A stretch of 63,971 nucleotides of DNA, the filler included, from Reticulomyxa filosa (Eukaryota; Protista; Foraminifera): the NCBI GenBank assembly GCA_000512085.1. It is 16 parts of 16 records of this genome, joined end to end, with 100 filler letters (N's around TTAATTAATTAA, not from the genome) between each part and the next. Parts side by side here need not be neighbours in the genome. Positions count along the whole stretch, not along the records: positions 43,602 to 55,148 come from ASPP01002585.1; 15 more parts are not named here. One strand, given 5' to 3'. Of the stretch, positions 43,602 to 55,148 are shown piece after piece. The notes beneath the pieces were generated by a model, which saw only the letters and a list, made by a program, of their open reading frames with translations, ran no database searches and had not been told where the DNA came from. A program made the translations under genes and the position numbers. The stretch's first letter is position 1. Each line of letters starts with the position of its first letter.

Positions 43602-44185
43602 TGAAATCCCAAAAACGAATGGTTTTGTCAAATGATGAAGAACAAATGACATTTTGACGATGATTATGATAATGATATGATGAAAATTTCACACAATACA
43701 CACCACTTGAATGTTCATTGAATGATTGAATTTTTTTGTTATTATCAACATCCCATACACGGACTGTGTTATCCTCTGATCCAGAACAAATGAATTGATA
43801 ATCATCAAATGTTGAATAATCAATTCTCCACACAATGTCGGTATGTATAGCAAATTCGTTGATTAATTTAGACGATGAACGAAATGTTTCAAACAAGACA
43901 GTAGATATCTATTGTAAATAGGATTTAAATATTTTGGTTAGTATTTTTTAAAAAAATAGAACAAATGAGCTAACATAATTGACAACAAGTTTGTCAAAAT
44001 CTTTGATCCATCCTAATTTAATGTTTAATGTTCGAATCCAATGATGGATAATTATTTGGGTCTCTTCTTCTGTTGACTGTTTCAATTACATGCAACGCTA
44101 AATAAAATAAAGAATAAAAACTTAAAAACAAATTGGACTTAACTTTCATTGTAACTTTTTTAGTTTTCTCTTGAGATACTCTCAT
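43602..44185 (-). CDS. WD40 protein, 3'-truncated; exons 44185-44144, 44076-43975, 43908-43602
   Basis: Leader exon EEETQIIIHHWIRTLNIKLGWIKDFDKLVVNY followed by WD repeats (SGSEDNTVRVWD, SSFDKTIRFWD). Confidence 0.88.
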
Positions 44186-44863
44186 GATGTAAGATGAAAA
44201 AAATGTTTGAACTCTTGTTGATAGAAGGAAAAGCTGAACTAAGATTTATATAATAAACATTTTGAAAGATAAATGTTAATCAGTAACAGCAATTTTACAA
44301 AGCAAAAATCTTAAAATAAAAAATAGTAATCATAGAAGGGCAATATAATGTTACTTATTTTGTGAATTTTTTATTAGATCTGTGTAAGCACTCAATTGTT
44401 CAAAAACAGAATAAAATAAGTATATATTTATGATTATTTATTTGATGTGAAAATAGCTGTTAAATCTTACATATTTGTCTTTCTTACAACAAAAAATTTG
44501 TTTATGATAACTTTGTAAATTTGATCCAAAAGAAAAGATATTATGTAATTTTATTTGAATATTTCAATAAATATACAACAATGTTAATTTCCATAAATGT
44601 TCTTAAGCAGATTTTGTTGGCGTGGAAAGGTTCTCATGATTGAATCAGGAATGCCAGACACACTTCAAATTATATTTGAATTTTTGGAAAAATAAATTCT
44701 TCATAATGTGGCATTTTATATTCAGTTTTTTCTGCAACTACTGTAAGAGAATTTTCGAAGAAAACGTTATTTTTCACACAAAAAAACATTTAATGATGTT
44801 TTATTTGCACAAAAACAATAGCCAATAAAAAAAAAATTTATAATATTACATCTGCACAAAAAA

Positions 44864-47800
44864 TCAAAATTTTCCACCACGTTGTTCAACAAGTAATTTT
44901 TGTTGAGTTGTCAAACCATTTGTATCTTTCCATATACTATTTTTCATTGATAGACCACAAATTTGGGCGCCTGCTTGCCAAATACATTTGAATTCATCTG
45001 GTTCAGCAACATTTATTTTATTGTCTACACTACCCCATAATCGAACTGTTCTATCCTGTGAACATGATACAATTGTTTTACTATCTGGTGAAAATTTTAC
45101 ATCACATACAGTCGAAAAGTGTCCTTCCAATATTTGGATTCGGCGCCCTGAAGATGCATCCCACATTCGAATAGTATTTTCCATAATTGAAATGATTTTA
45201 GATCCGTCTGATGAAAATTGTAATGCCGAGATATTTTCCCCATCCTCTAACGTTTGAATTTGTTTTCCAGATAATGCATCCCATAATCGAGCTGTTCTAT
45301 CCATGGAACATGATACAATCTTGGAACCGTCAGGCGAAAAATATACTTCCTTGACTGCATCCGAATGTCCTTCTAGTAGGAGAAGTTGCTTTCCAGATGA
45401 TACGTCCCATAATCGAATTGTGTTATCTGTGGAACATGACACAATTTTAGACCCGTCTGGTGAAAATTTCACACGGTGTACTCCCTCTGAATGCCCTTCA
45501 AATAATTGAAGTTGTTTCCCAGACACTACATCCCATAATCGAGCTGTGTTATCACCAGAGCAGGAAACGAGTTTGCAATTATCGGGCGAAAATTGTAAAT
45601 GCATTATCCAAGAAGTGTGTCCCTGCAATAAATGAACTTGTTTTCCTGATGAGGTGTCCCATATGTAAATATTTGCATTATATGTGGACGATGCAATTTT
45701 TGTTCCATCTTGTGAAAATTGTACAAGATTTATATAAAGTGAATGTTCCAACAGATGTTCTCTTCTGGTTGTAATGTCGAATATTCGAGGTGTATTATCG
45801 TCTACGAAGGATACAACTTTAGAGCCATCGGGAGAAAAGTGTACTTCACGTATACCAGGCAAATGCCCTTCCACTACTTGAAGTTGTCTTCCTGTTTGCA
45901 CATCCCACACTTGAACAGTTTTATCTAATGAACAGGACATAACTTTGGAGCCATCGGATGAAAAATGTACATTCGTTGCAATATCTTGATGCCCTTCAAT
46001 TGACTGGTTTTTTCTTTCTAAAGTAATATCCCATACTCGAATTGTTCCATCATGTGACCATGACAATATTTTGGGATCCTTTGGAAAAAATTCTATTCCA
46101 GATACAGTTTGGGAATGCCCTTCTAATATATGTAACTGTTTTCCTGATGACACATCCCATATTCGAATTGTATTATCTTGTCCACCAGATACAATTTTAG
46201 AACAATCAGGGGAAAATCTTGCTATTACAACATCTGATGAATGTCCTTGCAATAATTGAATTTGGTTTCCAGATGATGCATCCCATATTCGAATTGTACA
46301 ATCTTCTGCACATGAGACAAACTTTGAACCATCTGGTGATAATTCAACACTTTTTATTGGAGCTGAATGTCCTTGCAAAACTTGCACTTGTTTACCTGAC
46401 AATACATCCCATATTCGAATGGTTTTATCTGTTGAATATGATATAACTTTCGATCCATTTAACAAAAATCTTGCTTCGGATACAAATTCTGAGTGTCCTT
46501 CAAACATTTGAAGTTGTTTTCCGGATGACACGTCCCATACTCGAATAATATTATCTTCCGAACATGATAAAATTGTAGAGCCATCTGATGAAAATTCCAT
46601 AAGTATAAGTTTCGGAAGACATGTTATTGATTGAATTCTATTAGAAGATGATATATCCCAAATGTGAAGAATATCATCCTCTCCACATGACGCAAATTTA
46701 GAACCATCAACAGAAAATCGAGCATTACCTGAAAAAATTGGATGATTTTCCCATATTTGAATTTGTTTACCTGATAACACATCCCATATTCGAATTGTCT
46801 TGTCTGATGAAGCAGATATAACCTTGGAGCCATCAGTTGAAAATTGAACTCTGACTATATCACCACTATGTCCTTGCAATAATTGAAGCTGCTTTCCAGA
46901 TGATGCATCCCATATGCGAATTGTTTTATCCCATGCATAGGACATAATTTTTGATCCGTCTGGTGAAAATTGAGCTCCTTTTACTATGTGAGAATGTCCA
47001 TGCAAATATGCATATTCACCAAAATAAATTTCGTTCATTGACGTGTTTGTAAAATTAACATTGTTTAAACAAGTTCGAATAAAACTAACGTGATCTAAAT
47101 TAGCATTGCTAAGATCAGTTCCTTCGAGAAAAGCACGATCTAAAATTGCATGAGGAATTTTGACATTATTCCAATTTTTATTATTCATATTAATATTTGC
47201 TACATTAAGTATGGTAGCTGTATTTGCGGCTGCAATACTAACGTTTTCATTGTTCTTTGATGATTCGATAATACGAAATAATCTTGATTTTAAATTTTTA
47301 AATATTGGATTAGTGTCATAAATTCTGTCCGCAATAAATTGAATTAATCCCAATTCCTCATTTAATAATTTGCGATTAATAAAGAGTTTCGAAACATTTG
47401 CTTCAAATTGTTGTTGAAATTGCTGATTGTCCATATTGACAGAACCAACAACAGATTTGGGTTTCCATGAAATGATATCAAATATAATTTTCTGTGCAGC
47501 ATAATATTCTTGACAAGATTTATGTAAAAATTGATATTTGTTATCGCCTACTCTTCTTAATACATATTTCGCAATGCTATCGCCATTGAAATATTTTTCC
47601 CAAACATCAGCAATACCAGACATTTCATCGGCTGCTTTTATTTCTGTTTTTTCATCTGCAGTATTACTTTTATCCTCATTTTCCATTATTGAATCTAATT
47701 TATTTAATATTTCATTGTCATTCTGATACTGAAAATCTCGTTCGATTGCAACTTGATTTCCTTGATAAAACATATCAAATCCTAAATCAAAGCAATATTG

Positions 47801-50419
47801 TCTTAGTGTTGCTTTGATTTTATTCACGTTCATTTGAATTCTTAATTCTGCCAGTTTAGATATGATATTTTGGCTATGAATATCAATCCATTGCTCATTA
47901 AATACTTCATACACTTGTGCTTTTGAAATCCTACTTCCTGCACCATATTGTTTTACTAATGATGGTAATACACTTAAAATTAATTGAAGAAGAAAAGGCT
48001 CTTCTACCATTTTCTGTAAATTTGGATAATTATTTAATGTTTCCTCATATGTTTGTGGTGTCCAATCATCGGCATCATCTCCCTTTTTTTTATTTTTAGC
48101 TTTCATTTTTGCAAATTTTTCAATGTAGCTATACATTTGTTGTTTTGTAAAGGGCCATAAATACATCATCCATGTATCATTTTGATTTACACCAATTAGA
48201 GAAGTAGTAATTTCATCTTCGTGCAATACATTGCTTCTACAAGTGACAATAACTTTTGCATTCCACTGTTTCAAATTAAAACGATCATAGAAATATTTAT
48301 CATTTTCATTTTTACGATAAAAATCGAATATTTCATCAAATCCATCCATAATAAATATAAATGGCACTTTTTCACTAATTACATCTAAAATTTCCTTGTT
48401 TATATTTTTACTTTGTAATGATTGCAAAATAATATCTCTTTCATTATTTTTGTTATAAACTCTTGGCAATGAAATATAAACTGGGATAGGATTTTTTGAG
48501 TTGGATATATAGCTATTCCATAATGCCTGTTCTAAATGTCGACAAAAGATGCTTTTTCCAGATCCTGATTTTCCTTGAATTATCATTATAGATTTTTTTT
48601 GATTGTGTTGTTGTTGTTGTTGTTCAATGTGTTCCTTTTTTTCTTCTTTTTCTTCTGTTTTCAAAAATTCGGTTACATATTGATAACAATCAAATGTCTC
48701 TTGTTTCTCATTATCATTGGTATCTATGTGTGGATAATTATTGGCCTGTAATGGGATATATGTTTCAAGTGCTTGCGCTATAGCAATATCTTCTTCCATT
48801 TCTTGCTTTCTTGCTTCTTGCAATAATAATGCAAAATCGGCACAACTTGCTGGATATTTATCTCCAATAACATATTTTTTGTAATACTCGTATAAAGTCA
48901 CATAAATGGCCTTTCCTTTCTTTTTTTCTGGAGCAAATTTACAAAGTTGTTCATACACAAAATGTGCCATTTTTAATGGTACATTGTCATTAATTTCTGC
49001 TTCACTCTTTTTGGATAATTGAGGTGGTTTCAATATTCCAATATCTAAATGAGGTTTATAACGATTTGCTATTTTTTGTATTCCCTTATCATCAACCCAT
49101 TCACAGATAATATCATTGATCTTGGTCAATGTTTCATCACTTGCCTGTTTAAATTCTTCTTCAATTTCAGAGTCATTTGGTTGCCATGCTCGAATGTGTT
49201 CATAGAATAAATGACTTAATTTTGGGTTTTCAATTACAGTATATCCCTCCAATGTTGTAAAGCTTTTCAGTGTTGCTTGCATTTCGACATATACATCATG
49301 TTTTGGAACATACAATTTGATATTGTGAAATCTGTGATGTGTTTTTGATTGTTTTTCAAAGAAGTCTTTGTCTTCAGAAACAATCAGATTAAATTTTTCC
49401 GCTTTCTTCATCACGGCCACTGCTGTTTGCAATTTGGTTGAATTATCGCACAAAATAGTGAATCTCCCAACGTCAAATACTTGATTGTAATCTCCATTAT
49501 AATCACATTGAATCTTTTCCAGTAATCTCACCTTATCTTTTACTTTTGGTGGTTTTACTACCGTTATCAGATATTTTTGCAGCTCGGCCACCAAATTTAT
49601 AATTTCCACACTTGTCATTGCAGCTTCGCTTCGCGTGATTAAGTCCTCCAAACTCGTTGCATGTTGTTTAATTTTTTTGGCTTTCAGTTCATAAGATAGC
49701 CCAGATTTGATTTGATAAAAGCATTGATAATGATTGTCCGTTGCAGGTGTCGGATCGTTGCTTGCAGAAATGGAATGCTCTGCATTGAATATCATGGTCT
49801 TGATGATGGACGCGACAGTAGATTGTCCACAGTCTGGACAGTAATAAAGTGTGTTATCGGCATGAAATGAAATAGCGCCAAATCCAAGATTTACCCATAC
49901 GGGCAACTTTGCCTTTGCGGCTAAGCAATCTATATTTGTGCAATAGCCTTGCAAATTTATTCCAGGCTTTGTTGTTCCAATTTCTACTTTTTCATCTTCC
50001 TTTTTTAATTTTTCTGCCCTCTGTTCCGCTTCGGCATTTACGTCTTTGTGTTCCGACTGCTGTGCGATCAAGTCTTGCGTATTACTGTCCTGTCTCATTA
50101 ACGTGGCTGTCATCTGTTCAATCACAATCGATACATTGCCATTGCTTTCTTCGAGTTTTTTCTTCAATTCCTCTTCTTTGACCATGTCACCATATAATCG
50201 TATCAAGGCTTTCATTTCCATTTCATATTTTTCTGATCCGATTCGCTTGTCCATTCCTCCTACCATTTTTACACATCCTTGAGGAATATCGCGCAACTTT
50301 TTTTCATCGCCCTTTGTAAACGTATATCTTATTTCTTCAAATTTTATAAACACCTCATTTTGCGTCTCTGTCGCTGACACATGGTCTCTGTTTCCAACAT
50401 CACTGGTATTGAATGCCAT
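44864..50419 (-). CDS. NLR/STAND-like protein: CUE-like, Zn-binding, RelA/SpoT-like nucleotidyltransferase, NACHT NTPase, pentapeptide repeats, 16 WD40 repeats
   Basis: Uninterrupted 1851-aa ORF. Walker A GKSGSGKS (about 48551-48574), Walker B FIFIMDGFDE (about 48332-48362), sensor-1 VIVTCR, PFLL, winged-helix YQFLHKSCQEYYAA, pentapeptide run (about 47030-47150), WD40s (about 45037-46990), RelA/SpoT-like motifs (about 49190-49570). Confidence 0.93.
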   Translation of the reverse strand: MAFNTSDVGNRDHVSATETQNEVFIKFEEIRYTFTKGDEKKLRDIPQGCVKMVGGMDKRIGSEKYEMEMKALIRLYGDMVKEEELKKKLEESNGNVSIVIEQMTATLMRQDSNTQDLIAQQSEHKDVNAEAEQRAEKLKKEDEKVEIGTTKPGINLQGYCTNIDCLAAKAKLPVWVNLGFGAISFHADNTLYYCPDCGQSTVASIIKTMIFNAEHSISASNDPTPATDNHYQCFYQIKSGLSYELKAKKIKQHATSLEDLITRSEAAMTSVEIINLVAELQKYLITVVKPPKVKDKVRLLEKIQCDYNGDYNQVFDVGRFTILCDNSTKLQTAVAVMKKAEKFNLIVSEDKDFFEKQSKTHHRFHNIKLYVPKHDVYVEMQATLKSFTTLEGYTVIENPKLSHLFYEHIRAWQPNDSEIEEEFKQASDETLTKINDIICEWVDDKGIQKIANRYKPHLDIGILKPPQLSKKSEAEINDNVPLKMAHFVYEQLCKFAPEKKKGKAIYVTLYEYYKKYVIGDKYPASCADFALLLQEARKQEMEEDIAIAQALETYIPLQANNYPHIDTNDNEKQETFDCYQYVTEFLKTEEKEEKKEHIEQQQQQHNQKKSIMIIQGKSGSGKSIFCRHLEQALWNSYISNSKNPIPVYISLPRVYNKNNERDIILQSLQSKNINKEILDVISEKVPFIFIMDGFDEIFDFYRKNENDKYFYDRFNLKQWNAKVIVTCRSNVLHEDEITTSLIGVNQNDTWMMYLWPFTKQQMYSYIEKFAKMKAKNKKKGDDADDWTPQTYEETLNNYPNLQKMVEEPFLLQLILSVLPSLVKQYGAGSRISKAQVYEVFNEQWIDIHSQNIISKLAELRIQMNVNKIKATLRQYCFDLGFDMFYQGNQVAIERDFQYQNDNEILNKLDSIMENEDKSNTADEKTEIKAADEMSGIADVWEKYFNGDSIAKYVLRRVGDNKYQFLHKSCQEYYAAQKIIFDIISWKPKSVVGSVNMDNQQFQQQFEANVSKLFINRKLLNEELGLIQFIADRIYDTNPIFKNLKSRLFRIIESSKNNENVSIAAANTATILNVANINMNNKNWNNVKIPHAILDRAFLEGTDLSNANLDHVSFIRTCLNNVNFTNTSMNEIYFGEYAYLHGHSHIVKGAQFSPDGSKIMSYAWDKTIRIWDASSGKQLQLLQGHSGDIVRVQFSTDGSKVISASSDKTIRIWDVLSGKQIQIWENHPIFSGNARFSVDGSKFASCGEDDILHIWDISSSNRIQSITCLPKLILMEFSSDGSTILSCSEDNIIRVWDVSSGKQLQMFEGHSEFVSEARFLLNGSKVISYSTDKTIRIWDVLSGKQVQVLQGHSAPIKSVELSPDGSKFVSCAEDCTIRIWDASSGNQIQLLQGHSSDVVIARFSPDCSKIVSGGQDNTIRIWDVSSGKQLHILEGHSQTVSGIEFFPKDPKILSWSHDGTIRVWDITLERKNQSIEGHQDIATNVHFSSDGSKVMSCSLDKTVQVWDVQTGRQLQVVEGHLPGIREVHFSPDGSKVVSFVDDNTPRIFDITTRREHLLEHSLYINLVQFSQDGTKIASSTYNANIYIWDTSSGKQVHLLQGHTSWIMHLQFSPDNCKLVSCSGDNTARLWDVVSGKQLQLFEGHSEGVHRVKFSPDGSKIVSCSTDNTIRLWDVSSGKQLLLLEGHSDAVKEVYFSPDGSKIVSCSMDRTARLWDALSGKQIQTLEDGENISALQFSSDGSKIISIMENTIRMWDASSGRRIQILEGHFSTVCDVKFSPDSKTIVSCSQDRTVRLWGSVDNKINVAEPDEFKCIWQAGAQICGLSMKNSIWKDTNGLTTQQKLLVEQRGGKF

Positions 50420-50984
50420 CGACTTTGTCGCTTCTTTTTTTTTTTACCAGGTACGTATAATTTTTTAAGTGGGAAAAAAAAAAAGGGGGAGAGCATGTAT
50501 GTGTCTTCTCTTTTGCTTCAGGTTTTTTCCTTTTACCGTTTTGATTCTTAAATCCTTTTTCTCCGCTTAGTCTCCAACGTGTGCATAGACGAAGATCGTG
50601 CACGCTGTCTGCGTTTTGTGTATGTCTTTTAAAGTAAAAAAACGGCCAAAAAAAAAGAAAAGAAAACACATTTCTGACCTAATTGTCCTTCAGACATAAA
50701 AGTCATGGTCGCAAAAAAACAACTTGTGATTAAGCAGCAAAAAAAAGAGCCAAATTTGTAAAAAAGGATTTTTCAAGCACAAAAAAACTTGCAACCGTAA
50801 ACCAGTTCATTTCGTTTAAAATCCGAAGAAAAGTCATTGTTTGAAAAAATAATAGGACAAACTGCTTGTTTTTTATTAAGGGAAACTGCCTCCAGAAGAC
50901 TATCTTTCGAGCTTTTGCAATCTGCACCAGTTAGTGTAGAACGGGTTGTTTCGTATTTTTTGTTTGAACGTTGTTTAATGCGAA

Positions 50985-52081
50985 ATGGCTTTCGGAGCAA
51001 CAAAGATCTCCCTAGCTCTCCAAAAGCGTGATAATCCAGGTTTTTAAAATGCAAAAAAACAATTAATTTTGGCTTGCTTTAAAAAATGGTCATAATGTTG
51101 TAGCGCTGTGCTCGTGTGTACGTGACTCTCAAAATAAATAAATAAAAGGTGCGCTTTCGCCACTCTCCCCAATAAACCCAGCTCAAGTAGTGGCCACAAA
51201 TCCAGCTCCGAGTGTGGTTGGCGCAGCCATGGGCGGCCACATTTACAATGCGGCAGCAAGTGGAGTAGAAATTGTGGGCGAAACGATCAAAGTTGGCGGA
51301 TGTTCGGCAGCAGCAGTAAGTGGTTGTCAATGCGTAGCGGACACTGCGCGCTGGTGCCGAGGCAAAATATCGTCACAAGAACTCGGAAGAAGGACCCTGA
51401 AAAACGCCACAGTCAACGGAACCGCCGTGGTTGGGGGTGCCGGCGGATCCACTGTTGGTGCAACCATTGGCACTGGTCATTTCACTTTATTGTTATTATT
51501 ACATGTATTTTTGTCCCCTTTTTTTTTTTAAAAAAAAAAAAAAAAAACGGGGAGAGGAAACGAACTATAAAAGATCTGTTCAAACTTGGTTCATTTTTTT
51601 TTTTTTGTTAGCAATACTCCCTGGAACTGGAACGGTGGTAGGATCGATAGTGGGTGGTGTTTGTGGAAGCATTGGCGTTGGGAAGTTAGTAAATGATAAG
51701 TTTGACGATTGGTGGGGCCCGCGTGGCAGTGACGACCCAACTCAAAGTCAAGACACAACAACAACAACAACAACAACAACGACAGCGACAACGACAACGA
51801 CGACGGCGGGAAATAAGGCGCTGCCAATGTCAACATCGACAACAAATGGATATGTTTGTGATGATGCACTCTGCTCGTCTTTGCAGTTCTTTGGCTTTTT
51901 GCCGAAAGACTTTGGCCGCACAGAGGTTGTGAATATGGATATTCTGGTCGAGCGATACAGGGAATACTCACGTGTATATCACCCACAAAAAGGAGGGACC
52001 AAAGAAGAGTGGCTTTGCTTGATCAATCATTTCGCTGTTGCTGCAAATGCTATTCGCGATAGAGATGGAGCTGGGGTTTAG
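50985..52081 (+). CDS. Glycine-zipper protein with C-terminal degenerate J-domain (HPQ); exons 50985-51039, 51149-51475, 51612-52081
   Basis: Phase-compatible GT-AG introns. GxxxG array GGAGGSTVGATIGT|AILPGTGTVVGSIVGGVCG, then a poly-Thr linker and YREYSRVYHPQKGGTKEEW (J-domain helix II-loop-helix III pattern). Confidence 0.72.
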
Positions 52082-52934
52082 TTTTTATGTACTTATACAT
52101 ATATTCATATTATATACATATATATATATTTTTTTTTTTATGTAAATATGGATATTGTGTGGTTAAAAAAAATAGACGACGGGGAGAAAAAGAGCTGCTT
52201 CTTCTTCCTCTTCTTCTGCTCGAGAGACAACGCAAGGTGGAGGTGGCGGCTCTTTAGTCGGCGTTAACTCGGCCCTGTTTGCTGTTTCGTTTTCCGTTTC
52301 TTTTGGAAACATCAATTTGCAATTGTAAATTGCCTTGTCGAAAATTTTTCATGTTTGAGTTGATGTGAGATAAAGAAAGCAGAAGCTTGTTTTCATACTC
52401 ACCTTTAGTCATTTCTATTTTGTTTGGTTGTTTTTTTCTTGCAGCTTTGGAGTTGAAAACATTTTTCGAGAATTGTTGTCTTCATAGCATATAATATAAA
52501 GCGACCCTCCACTTATTTTTTCATATCAAGTGATTGTGAACTGACTTAACCAAATCGTTTTGCAAACGCTTTTGGTTTTACCAAATTAAAAATTTATCAT
52601 AAACTTCTTAAAAAATACTAGAAATAATTTAAAAACATATTGTTGCATTGTCATATGATTTCTTTTATAGCGACATTAAACTCGTAACAAAATACAATGC
52701 TAATTTTTTAAATAAAACACATTCCATTTCGGACATCTTAAACAATTTATTTTAAAAATAATTTTCAATCTTCAGTGATTTCATTTGGATGCTGCAATCC
52801 AGTGCGGATCACGGAGTCCAAAAAAGGATGGTCATCTTGAAAATCGTCAGGATTTTCTGTCCAGTTGCTGAGTGCAGTGGCAAAGGGGAAATCACAACTT
52901 ATTAAAAAACTCTTTACTTACGTATTTTTGGTAT

Positions 52935-53290
52935 TTAAGAAATGCACCTGTGAAGGAGTATGACAAGTAATATGACCACAACTGTCAAAGTGATCACCAA
53001 TGCTAGAAATCCGGCATCTTCATACCAACTTTCGTTAGCGTGTTTCTCAGTTTTTGTTGTTGAAGTTTCCTCTTGTCCTTTTAAAAGGTTGGTTTCTGGA
53101 TCAACGATATCAAAATAACTTTCTGTCTGCAAATATACAGTGTTCGTTTCCAATATCTTTTTTTGAACTTATAAAAACAAAAGCTCACTCGGTCAGCTTC
53201 GTCAAGTTGAGTGTGAACATAAGAAACGATGTGTTGATAGCCAGGACGATTTTGTGGTTTTGTTTGATTTTCGTGCATGTCCGTTATCAT
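52935..53290 (-). CDS. Small single-pass membrane protein fragment, frameshifted
   Basis: C-terminal TM segment GFLALVITLTVVVILLVILL; the upstream part is in another frame across an A-run. Confidence 0.35.
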
Positions 53291-54420
53291 ATCTGTCTTA
53301 AAAAACAGGACCCAAAAGAATTATTTCAATTTTCACGGCAAGTGATTGACGTCAAAACATTTCTACTAAAATAGTTTTAACTTTATTTAATTCTACACAT
53401 TTTTAGTTTCACAAAAGGAGACAATATACAAACAACAGGAAATTTTCTACAAAACTTTCAAAGTGAATTAATTTTCTTTATTCATTTTCCAATATATGCA
53501 AAACTTTAAGTTTGTTAATTAGAGTTAAAAAATTATTTGATTATCTTTTTGCTCTTGCTTTGTCAATTTTAACTTATCAAACCCGATTCATCTGCAAACT
53601 ATCTCTTCATTTCAAATAAATAAATAAAAATAAAGGATATAACTAATTGTGCCATCAATTCTGATCTGTGAGCATATTTATTCAAAAAACAAATTGAAAT
53701 AATAACAAATATCTAACAAAAATAGGCAAAGTTAACTAAGCGATAAGTAGCTGTTTTAGAAAATAGTTTTTCTGGCTTCAACAGTCTTGAGTACGTTGTG
53801 TGTTCCATAAAGGTTCGTAATACTTGTACTTTATAAAAGAAAGTGTATCGAATTATACATAAAATTTATTACATATAATGCAGTCGTTACTAATACAAGC
53901 AATGGCAAGCTATGCTCAGTAAATATTTATTTCTGAATGATGACTGTAATAAAAGATCTATTCTTGCAGTGAAATATCAATAAAAACGAAAGCAAACTTA
54001 AATGAAGAAATTAAAAAAATAGAAATTGTATTGTCAATGTATGTTATTGTGAACAAACATTTAAAAAGGTATTTTTATTTCACCTTTGCACGACAAAACA
54101 CACTACAGACATGGATAAGTCAAATTGTGAAAATCTATTATTGATGAACCAATTCAGTTGGCCTCACTAAAGAAACTTACAAGAGCGATTTTTCATAAGA
54201 AAGACAAACTACACCCAAAAATATCATAATAAATTGAGCAACTTTCAAAGTCTTACTGCGAAACAAGAACAAAAAGAAGAAAAAAAAGAGTTTGTGTTCC
54301 CAACTTAAAAAGGCAAGAGTTACAACCTTTTTTCTTTTTTTAAAAATTTTATTAATGCAATATTGAAATCACAAAAAAAACAACTCACATTTCATATCAA
54401 CGCGACTTGAGGTTGTGGAC

Positions 54421-54674
54421 TCAGAGAGTGGCCTGAACGGAGATGCGAGCAATTCGGACACGTTGAGGAGGATAAGACGCGAACATTTCATCCATGACAC
54501 TGTTCATGTCCCAGCCAGAGACAAATTTGGTTATCGGTTTTTCATTGCCATTATCTGTTATCTCGATCAGCTTCACTTCAAATATCTAATTTCATTACAA
54601 CAAATAAGCAATTGTGTTAGTTGTAGGTGTGTGATTATCAGGTTTTTATTTATACACATATATGTATATATTTA

Positions 54675-54714
<40 letters not shown>

Positions 54715-55148
54715 CACGTGAATGCATTTTCTTCGTTTGGGCAACACATCCGATTCCTTGTCATCTGTAGTGAGACATGTGAAGGGACGCTTTACTGGAA
54801 CAGGTCCCAGTTTTGTGCCCTTTGTCGGATTTTTTGCAGTTGAGCCTTTTGTTCCCGAACAATCATTGCCCTTACCACTGGCATTTTTGTTATTGTTGTT
54901 CGTGTCGTTATTGGTTTGAATAACATCCAACCCATTTTTGTTCGCACGTGGTACTACCTTTGCCACATCACTTTCATTCACATTGTTGGCATTTGTTATC
55001 GGGTTGCTATGACTAGTCTCCGTTTCTGATTTATTCGCTTTCTTCTCATTATTTGCTTTGTCATCATTTACTTGCTCTTTTTCTTTTTCTCGTTCTTTTT
55101 CATTAGTTTTAGTCTCAGTCTTCACTTCAGCTTTAGTTTTTTTTTTTT
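54421..55148 (-). CDS. Hypothetical protein, last two exons (55148-54718, 54585-54421), 5'-truncated
   Basis: Charged low-complexity exon spliced in phase 0 to IFEVKLIEITDNG...RISVQATL-stop. Confidence 0.6.

Follow-up and report, generated by a model that had tools for sequence, protein, structure and literature searches.

A predicted Tas1-like RSH synthetase domain in the N-terminal position of a NACHT-WD40 protein family of the foraminifer Reticulomyxa filosa

Positions 43602–55148 of the window (the whole analysed stretch of 63,971 nucleotides, filler included, from Reticulomyxa filosa) are a single contig of 11,547 bp (ASPP01002585.1). Its largest feature is an open reading frame (ORF) at 44864–50419, the product of which is identical to the R. 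filosa protein P0002. The protein has the tripartite order of NOD-like receptors (NLRs) of the signal transduction ATPases with numerous domains (STAND) type, i.e., an N-terminal RelA/SpoT homologue (RSH) domain, a central NACHT NTPase, and C-terminal WD40 repeats. By its closest sequence relationship and by clade signatures, we assign the RSH domain to the Tas1-like clade. The protein is probably an immune or cell-death receptor which acts on the nucleotide pool of the cell, as judged by analogy with other NLRs. For the whole chain, in which an NLR-type STAND receptor carries a Tas1/Apk1-like RSH effector with a (p)ppApp-type nucleotide product, we estimate a probability of about 50%. The following elements carry this reading:

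44864–50419, minus strand: complete, intronless ORF of the NLR-like STAND protein (1851 amino acids (aa) plus stop codon, no internal stop).
49142–49657, minus strand: RSH synthetase-like pyrophosphokinase domain of the Tas1/Apk1-like type, presumed effector (aa ~255–426), placed by Pfam, profiles, and predicted fold.
48113–48589, minus strand: NACHT NTPase (aa 611–769; Pfam PF05729, E 1e-9, with Walker A and B).
45032–47029, minus strand: 16 WD40 repeats, presumed sensor (aa 1131–1796; Pfam WD40, E 2e-133, 16 stretches).

A preliminary description had read this ORF as encoding a NACHT-WD40 STAND protein of a rhizarian protist, the N-terminal slot of which holds an effector resembling RSH alarmone synthetases. 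Pfam, profiles, and the predicted fold agree on this assignment, and the host is indeed a rhizarian, the freshwater foraminifer R. filosa. The motifs which it listed were located in the translation at the positions and in the order it gave. The NACHT domain downstream of them is intact, as had been claimed, with 38.9 bits against a cutoff of 26.7, Walker A (GKSGSGKS) at aa 616–623, and Walker B (FIFIMDGFDE) at aa 687–696. The 16 WD40 repeats are enough for two propellers.

The resemblance of aa ~255–426 to RSH synthetases is real and lies well beyond chance by four routes. Upstream of the NACHT domain, RelA_SpoT (PF04607) is the only Pfam match named; it covers aa 293–381 with 20–22 bits (21.5) and E 2e-4 to 8e-4. 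When the RSH domains of 37 R. filosa paralogues were scanned separately, 36 matched PF04607 at E ≤ 0.01 (best 4.4e-7). A profile built solely from these 37 domains (A1) had Tas1 (6OX6) as its sole significant match among PDB sequences (E 0.0029), and Tas1 also ranked first when the single sequence was searched (E 0.06). Against 1.84 billion representative proteins, the same profile gave 112 matches at E ≤ 0.001. About 55 of these are not R. filosa-like, among them 19 with PF04607 and four with the toxin-cargo domain eCIS_core. Their sources include metagenome-assembled genomes of Polyangia and Kofleriaceae, an SPP1 gp7-like phage protein, and the protists Guillardia theta, Triparma laevis, and Proboscia alata.

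From 33 of the non-Reticulomyxa relatives, 34 domain segments were aligned without any R. filosa sequence (A5). With hhalign, the R. filosa alignment matched A5 with a probability of 99.7% (E 3.1e-26, 160 columns). A5 in turn matched the solved RSH enzymes, with Tas1 at E 1.2e-36, YwaC at 8e-11, SaSAS at 1e-6, and RelP at 4e-7. RelSeq, Rel, and RelA followed at 1e-5 to 3e-4 (RelSeq 1e-5), and RelQ lies within the range of 1e-10 to 1e-4 that is spanned by YwaC, RelP, RelQ, and Rel. Whether the query is the single protein or a profile of the paralogues or of the family, Tas1 is thus the best or only significant match among PDB sequences. The sequence identity of the R. filosa domain to Tas1 is only ~18–20%.

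The fold was predicted with AlphaFold2 in two models. Model 1 was calculated from paralogues only and reached a predicted local distance difference test (pLDDT) score of 72. Model 2 was calculated from a mixed alignment of 46 sequences, i.e., R. filosa domains and distant relatives (A3), and reached 81, with the core above 90. In a Foldseek search with model 1, the top 37 PDB matches are all RSH synthetases, with Tas1 as the best (E 2.7e-7). A VIA search with model 2 gave SAS2 (Z 14.8), RelQ (14.7), Rel (14.0), Tas1 (13.3), and CapRel (12.9), and its top 29 rows are all RSH synthetases with Z 8.8–14.8 over 114–172 aligned residues. Other nucleotidyltransferase-like folds, such as those of RsfS, Cid1, and Pol mu, reach at most Z 8.7. 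In the models, the domain adopts the RSH SYNTH fold, with a nucleotidyltransferase-like alpha/beta core and an N-terminal helical pair. The fold check by AlphaFold and Foldseek proposed in the preliminary description therefore came out in favour of an RSH synthetase (Foldseek top 37 all RSH, VIA Z 13–15).

Tas1/Apk1 is a (p)ppApp synthetase toxin of the type VI secretion system of Pseudomonas aeruginosa (PDB 6OX6), which makes pApp, ppApp, and pppApp and depletes ATP (PMC11782079, PMC7229694). It is the closest solved relative of the R. filosa domain by sequence and a top match by fold, and both share K-x3-R-x2-EK-x3-DY-x-GD, D-x-x-R, E-x-Q, and H-x-x-YE. Of these, DY-x-GD and the D-x-x-R form (in place of D-x-x-G-x-R) are signatures shared specifically with Tas1. 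The two differ in the G-loop, where the R. filosa domain has HH in place of GY. They also differ in deployment, as Tas1 is delivered between cells and held by an immunity protein, whereas the R. filosa domain forms part of an intracellular STAND receptor. A published survey of Tas1/Apk1 homologues is confined to bacteria.

The early comparison had been with the toxic small alarmone synthetases (toxSAS) FaRel, PhRel, and CapRel. This kinship stands at the level of the RSH synthetase fold, which the domain shares with CapRel(SJ46), FaRel2, and other toxSAS (CapRel Z 12.9). It does not stand for the closest relationship: the nearest relatives are of the Tas1 type, while CapRel and FaRel2 are absent from the results of every sequence search of the RSH domain. 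This shifts the odds toward a nucleotide product. An RSH domain active on the 3'-CCA end of tRNA, as in CapRel, FaRel2, and PhRel2, with translational shut-off as its output, would fit the CapRel match among the structures and the action of CapRel in anti-phage defence as a fused sensor-effector (PMC11782079). The replacement of GY by HH in the G-loop could likewise reflect a non-nucleotide acceptor. We nevertheless consider this unlikely. Besides the Tas1-type relationship, the G-loop as read from the sequence is flanked by the basic residues K358, H361, H362, R363, H365, and K369, which appear to resemble the large positive acceptor patch of alarmone synthetases and not the small patch of FaRel2 (PMC11782079). 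The Tas1-like assignment with a nucleotide acceptor is therefore preferred.

The active-site motifs of the domain are as follows:

KVKDKVRLLEK (49514–49546, minus strand; aa 292–302): This basic motif binds the phosphates of the donor ATP in the family. K294 and K302 are invariant, and R298 and E301 are nearly so. It maps to the donor-ATP motif of FaRel2, which consists of R64, K66, S70, and K74 (PMC11782079).

FDVGRF (49460–49477, minus strand; aa 315–320): D316 is the equivalent of the Mg-holding aspartic acid (PMC11782079) and forms the D-x-x-R motif with R319. The equivalent stretch in Tas1 is DLAR.

THHRFH (49325–49342, minus strand; aa 360–365): This is the G-loop equivalent, in which H361 and H362 stand in place of the Gly-Tyr of the family.

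VEMQATL (49268–49288, minus strand; aa 378–384): This stretch holds the catalytic E379-x-Q381 (ExQ), which is invariant in the paralogues and in distant relatives. E379 maps to the strand-5 glutamic acid (PMC11782079).

SHLFYEHIR (49190–49216, minus strand; aa 402–410): This distal motif comprises H403-x-x-Y406-E407 and R410. The His, Tyr, and Arg are nearly invariant in A3 and A5, and the stretch aligns with GHKYYEDWR in Tas1.

The catalytic and ATP-binding set, R/K-x-K-x3-(S/R)-x3-K, the Mg-binding Asp, and E-x-Q, is thus present in full. Throughout the 46 sequences of A3, K294, K302, D316, E379, and Q381 do not vary, and R298, E301, Y307, G309, R319, K351, H403, Y406, and R410 are near-invariant. 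The same residues are invariant or nearly so across the 37 paralogues (D316 in 37/37). Hence, the catalytic D and E positions are kept, as the preliminary description had stated, and this extends to the paralogues and to distant relatives. The change from GY to HH that it reported is also real, since the family alignment puts H361 on the Gly and H362 on the Tyr of GYRD, and the family G-Y-R-D reads H361-H362-R363-F364 in R. filosa. The G-loop Tyr stacks on the acceptor base. In bacterial enzymes, the FaRel variant Y175A is described as enzymatically compromised, and the FaRel2 variant Y128F was used for structural work (PMC11782079, PMC7229694). Accordingly, H362 could alter the rate or the specificity of the reaction.

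Several points weigh against the reading as a Tas1-like effector with a (p)ppApp-type product. The PF04607 score of the copy at 44864–50419 lies under the gathering cutoff of 27 bits, and the C-terminal helices of the RSH domain are poorly predicted. Position 362 is His in 33 of the 37 paralogues and Tyr in the other four, so that the activity or the specificity of the domain may differ from that of its relatives. The Tas1-like fold covers a range from adenine to guanine specificity (PMC12691689), and clade membership therefore does not fix the product. The immune role, finally, is argued solely by analogy with other NLRs.

Two of these points, the loss of the G-loop Tyr in 33/37 and the score under the Pfam cutoff, would also fit a catalytically dead or nearly dead RSH fold that serves as a scaffold, an oligomerisation surface, or a nucleotide-binding module. 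The true output would then lie elsewhere, in the N-terminal region or in a recruited partner, and a conserved four-cysteine module and a leader do lie further N-terminal and could be the real signalling end. All other catalytic and ATP-binding residues, however, are invariant in the 37 paralogues and common to distant active relatives, and no other part of the protein is as strongly constrained as the RSH domain. In pseudoenzymes, it is usually the metal-binding Asp or Glu that has been lost. A dead fold is therefore improbable in our view.

The range of specificities bears on (p)ppGpp as the product, made either as an intracellular signal or, following a proposal made for fungal NLRs, for the manipulation of bacteria, be they prey, symbionts, or pathogens. 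The feeding of R. filosa on bacteria counts for such a role. The canonical synthetases YwaC, RelP, RelQ, and Rel are clear homologues and fold matches. Some of the Tas1-like exported enzymes are GTP-specific (VpEAS) or promiscuous (SaEAS) (PMC12691689), and for the fungal domains, Dyrka et al. considered a role directed at bacteria (PMC4986451). On the other hand, most copies have another residue in place of the Tyr that stacks on guanine, the product of the nearest characterised relative is (p)ppApp, and it is not obvious how a cytosolic NLR effector would reach bacteria. We regard this product as quite unlikely.

The (p)ppApp-type product is placed first because Tas1 is the nearest characterised relative and because many of the bacterial relatives are toxin cargos. 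Among these are fusions with eCIS_core/DUF4157 and a phage SPP1 gp7-like fusion, which fits a killing effector. That the domain is enzymatically active is an inference, as are its acceptor, an activation via oligomerisation, and a role in immunity, allorecognition, or cell death. Upon binding of a trigger ligand by the WD40 propellers, the NACHT domain would exchange its nucleotide, switch, and oligomerise. The RSH heads would thereby be released from autoinhibition or brought together. The activated RSH domain would transfer the beta-gamma pyrophosphate of ATP to the 3'-OH of a purine nucleotide, most likely an adenine nucleotide, giving (p)ppApp as with Tas1. ATP would be consumed and purine metabolism poisoned, and the affected cytoplasm would stop growing or die.

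P0002 has at least 48 relatives, all from R. filosa, which are 60–88% identical over aa 230–470. Further fragments of the family in the library of 1.84 billion proteins are mostly from R. filosa as well; the others are one ENA metagenome protein and AAFX01, a whole-genome-shotgun/metagenome record. We compared the protein of 44864–50419 with its paralogues region by region with BLAST. The mean identity is highest in the RSH domain (80%), intermediate in the linker (64%), the NACHT domain (62%), the post-NACHT region (64%), and the pentapeptide segment (65%), and lowest in the WD40 array (50%). A constrained enzymatic head with a fast-diverging repeat tail is the pattern that would be expected of an effector-sensor receptor family. 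For bacterial NACHT proteins, the same pattern of a fast-evolving sensor is described by Kibby et al. (bioRxiv 10.1101/2022.07.19.500537). In a quick maximum-likelihood tree of the RSH domain, the R. filosa sequences form a single clade (support 96); its neighbours were not resolved, so no donor lineage is deduced.

This pattern also bears on the proposal that the STAND protein serves in housekeeping or in developmental signalling, e.g., in the control of cytoplasmic streaming or of starvation responses via a nucleotide messenger, and not in immunity or cell death. Not all STAND/WD40 proteins are immune, and the link to non-self recognition is an analogy. With at least 48 paralogues, a WD40 sensor as the fastest diverging part, and bacterial toxin cargos as the closest relatives of the effector, we give this proposal little chance, as expansion with a diverging sensor and toxin-cargo kinship are typical of immune or allorecognition NLR repertoires (PMC4986451, PMC12258605; Kibby et al.). 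An immune or cell-death receptor is preferred.

One R. filosa protein deviates in architecture. P0057 (1017 aa, annotated as "vcbs repeat-containing protein") has its RSH domain at aa 691–922, near the C-terminus, which suggests that its architecture differs or that the gene model is fused or mis-joined.

Fusions of this kind are already on record. In 2014, Dyrka et al. catalogued RelA_SpoT among the N-terminal effectors of fungal NLRs, including the combination RelA_SpoT-NACHT-WD40 (PMC4986451), and it is a canonical N-terminal NLR domain in a survey of Sordariales, where 14 of 17 RelA_SpoT NLRs (82%) are T-NACHT proteins (PMC12258605). The preliminary description knew of no characterised eukaryotic NLR with this effector. 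This is right insofar as we found no biochemical characterisation of an NLR RelA_SpoT domain in the literature; the implied novelty is too large for the fusion itself, which is catalogued in fungi (PMC4986451, PMC12258605). The fungal RelA_SpoT-NACHT-WD40/ANK NLRs, e.g., in Gaeumannomyces graminis, have the same order of RSH-type domain, NACHT, and WD40, and in both groups the domain reads as an enzymatic effector attached directly to an NLR. The R. filosa family differs in its rhizarian host, in its copy number of at least 48 per genome against 17 in the Sordariales set, and in a Tas1-like domain that falls under the Pfam cutoff. It further has a four-cysteine module ahead of the RSH domain and, preceding the WD40 array, pentapeptide repeats. 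Such a pentapeptide spacer is outside the canonical C-terminal repeats (ANK, TPR, WD40, HEAT) of the fungal surveys (PMC4986451, PMC12258605). Our profile search of 1.84 billion proteins returned no recognisable fungal NLR, which is uninformative, as in a database so large not even Tas1 would pass the threshold. In the literature, we found no report of a RelA_SpoT NLR outside fungi and none on a NACHT or NLR protein of Reticulomyxa. New are thus the rhizarian host, the expansion to at least 48 copies, the Tas1-like clade with an HH G-loop, and the extra modules.

Two bacterial systems follow a related logic. CapRel is a toxic pyrophosphokinase that stays silent until a sensor in the same protein detects an invader (PMC11782079), to which the R. 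filosa receptor may be likened. The sensor of CapRel is a pseudo-zinc-finger antitoxin domain and its substrate is tRNA, whereas the R. filosa protein uses a NACHT-WD40 module and has no match to CapRel at the sequence level. The anti-phage bNACHT proteins (Kibby et al., bioRxiv 10.1101/2022.07.19.500537) have the same organisation of effector, NACHT, and variable sensor, the sensor diversifying fastest. In contrast, the R. filosa protein is eukaryotic, and a Tas1-like RSH effector is not among the bNACHT examples in the accessible part of that preprint.

Bacterial defence and toxin modules recur in eukaryotic immunity, as in the cases of TIR, cGAS/STING, gasdermin, viperin, and NACHT. To our knowledge, bench work on toxic RSH pyrophosphokinases has so far been confined to bacteria and phages, and RSH domains of eukaryotic NLRs figure only as a Pfam label in surveys of fungi. 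Here, a free-living foraminifer has expanded an RSH-NACHT-WD40 fusion to ~50 copies with intact catalytic residues. A bolder version of our reading is possible but doubtful. In it, the ~50 R. filosa receptors would kill or arrest the cell via (p)ppApp-type nucleotides and represent the first eukaryotic Tas1-like NLR death effector. The domain would have come from bacterial toxin cargo independently of the fungal NLRs, and the His-for-Tyr G-loop would perhaps confer a new acceptor specificity. As the domain has ~180 aa and is easily expressed, it offers an entry to the question whether eukaryotes make (p)ppApp-like nucleotides, and to the further question whether depletion of ATP can be the means by which an NLR kills. 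In addition, the R. filosa family adds to the range of protist lineages in which NLR-like repertoires are found.

The RSH-NACHT fusion is not unique to R. filosa. A second one, built differently, is encoded by P0115 (L001:2745-6257, plus strand) on an ENA metagenome contig of 6.5 kb. It consists of ankyrin repeats, a Tas1-like RSH domain (aa 341–555) with the G-loop THYRD, and a NACHT domain (aa 737–899). Its closest relative is the 444-aa protein P0101, and a homologue search with its RSH region gave nothing beyond P0115 itself. From the sequence matches in protists, the Tas1-like RSH clade may be wider in eukaryotes than recognised.

Further observations concern individual relatives. The Guillardia theta protein P0109 has two Tas1-like RSH copies, and P0155 of Triparma laevis has two copies together with TPR and C1 domains. 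In the diatom Proboscia alata, a borderline RSH match (E 8e-4) lies inside an NPHP3_N-WD40 protein (P0154). The 3127-aa protein P0095 (NCBI/JGI), presumably bacterial from its eCIS_core at aa 204–280, has two tandem Tas1-like RSH domains at aa ~2276–2461 and ~2592–2780, which are mutually 92% identical, and a calpain-type protease at the C-terminus. It looks like a multi-warhead toxin cargo.

The remaining features of the ORF are the following:

50033–50419, minus strand: N-terminal leader (aa 1–129), variable and partly coiled-coil-like, with no family assignment.
49769–49978, minus strand: four-cysteine zinc-ribbon-like module (aa ~148–217) with C160, C165, C194, and C197.
47042–47197, minus strand: pentapeptide-repeat segment (aa ~1075–1126) between the NACHT-associated region and the WD40 array (PF00805, E 3.8e-6, above cutoff).

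The leader gave no Pfam or NCBIfam match; its length differs among the paralogues, and it is only partly common to them. Directly upstream of the RSH domain, the four-cysteine module follows the pattern C-x4-C ... C-x2-C with the consensus GINLQGYC-N--CLA ... CPDC, and the four cysteines are invariant or nearly so in ~27–28 paralogues. The paralogue P0001 matches the N-terminal region twice, with residues 26–102 and 390–484. The module matched no known family, with only a sub-threshold Pfam hit (Zn_ribbon_NOB1, E 0.07–0.1), and an Atlas lookup returned only unnamed eukaryotic clusters. It could be a regulatory zinc ribbon, perhaps an autoinhibitory one after the model of the pseudo-zinc-finger of CapRel.

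The pentapeptide label PF00805 is also found on many R. filosa paralogues. In the WD40 region, Tandem Repeats Finder detected just a weak 126-nt periodicity (2.4 copies, 75% matches), and there is therefore no sign of near-identical, concertedly evolving repeats as in the fungal HNWD genes. An NCBIfam scan gave no match for any part of the protein. A PADLOC match to mad8 (E 0.0025) was dismissed as weak and meaningless. Bacterial contamination was ruled out, as the ORF has the same low G+C content as its flanks (26–40%), is part of a contig of R. filosa, and is one of dozens of paralogues in this species.

Beside the ORF, the segment 51190–52081 (plus strand) has the highest G+C content of the contig piece (46–47%) and contains overlapping plus-strand ORFs, which likely represent an adjacent gene that is interrupted by an intron or by a change of frame. 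These ORFs encode glycine-zipper-like hydrophobic segments and a poly-Thr tract, the latter from an ACA/ACAACG repeat at 51755–51805. The C-terminal stretch (HPQKGG) is faintly J-domain-like, and its best PDB match, the DnaJ homologue dnj-2, is not significant (E 0.36). A Pfam match to the VbhA antitoxin in the ORF 51190–51528 is probably spurious (23.8 bits against a cutoff of 25.9). No tRNA genes were found anywhere in the piece 43602–55148. A short TATACA-type repeat lies at 52094–52130, and a (TA)n microsatellite of ~32 copies at 54647–54711.

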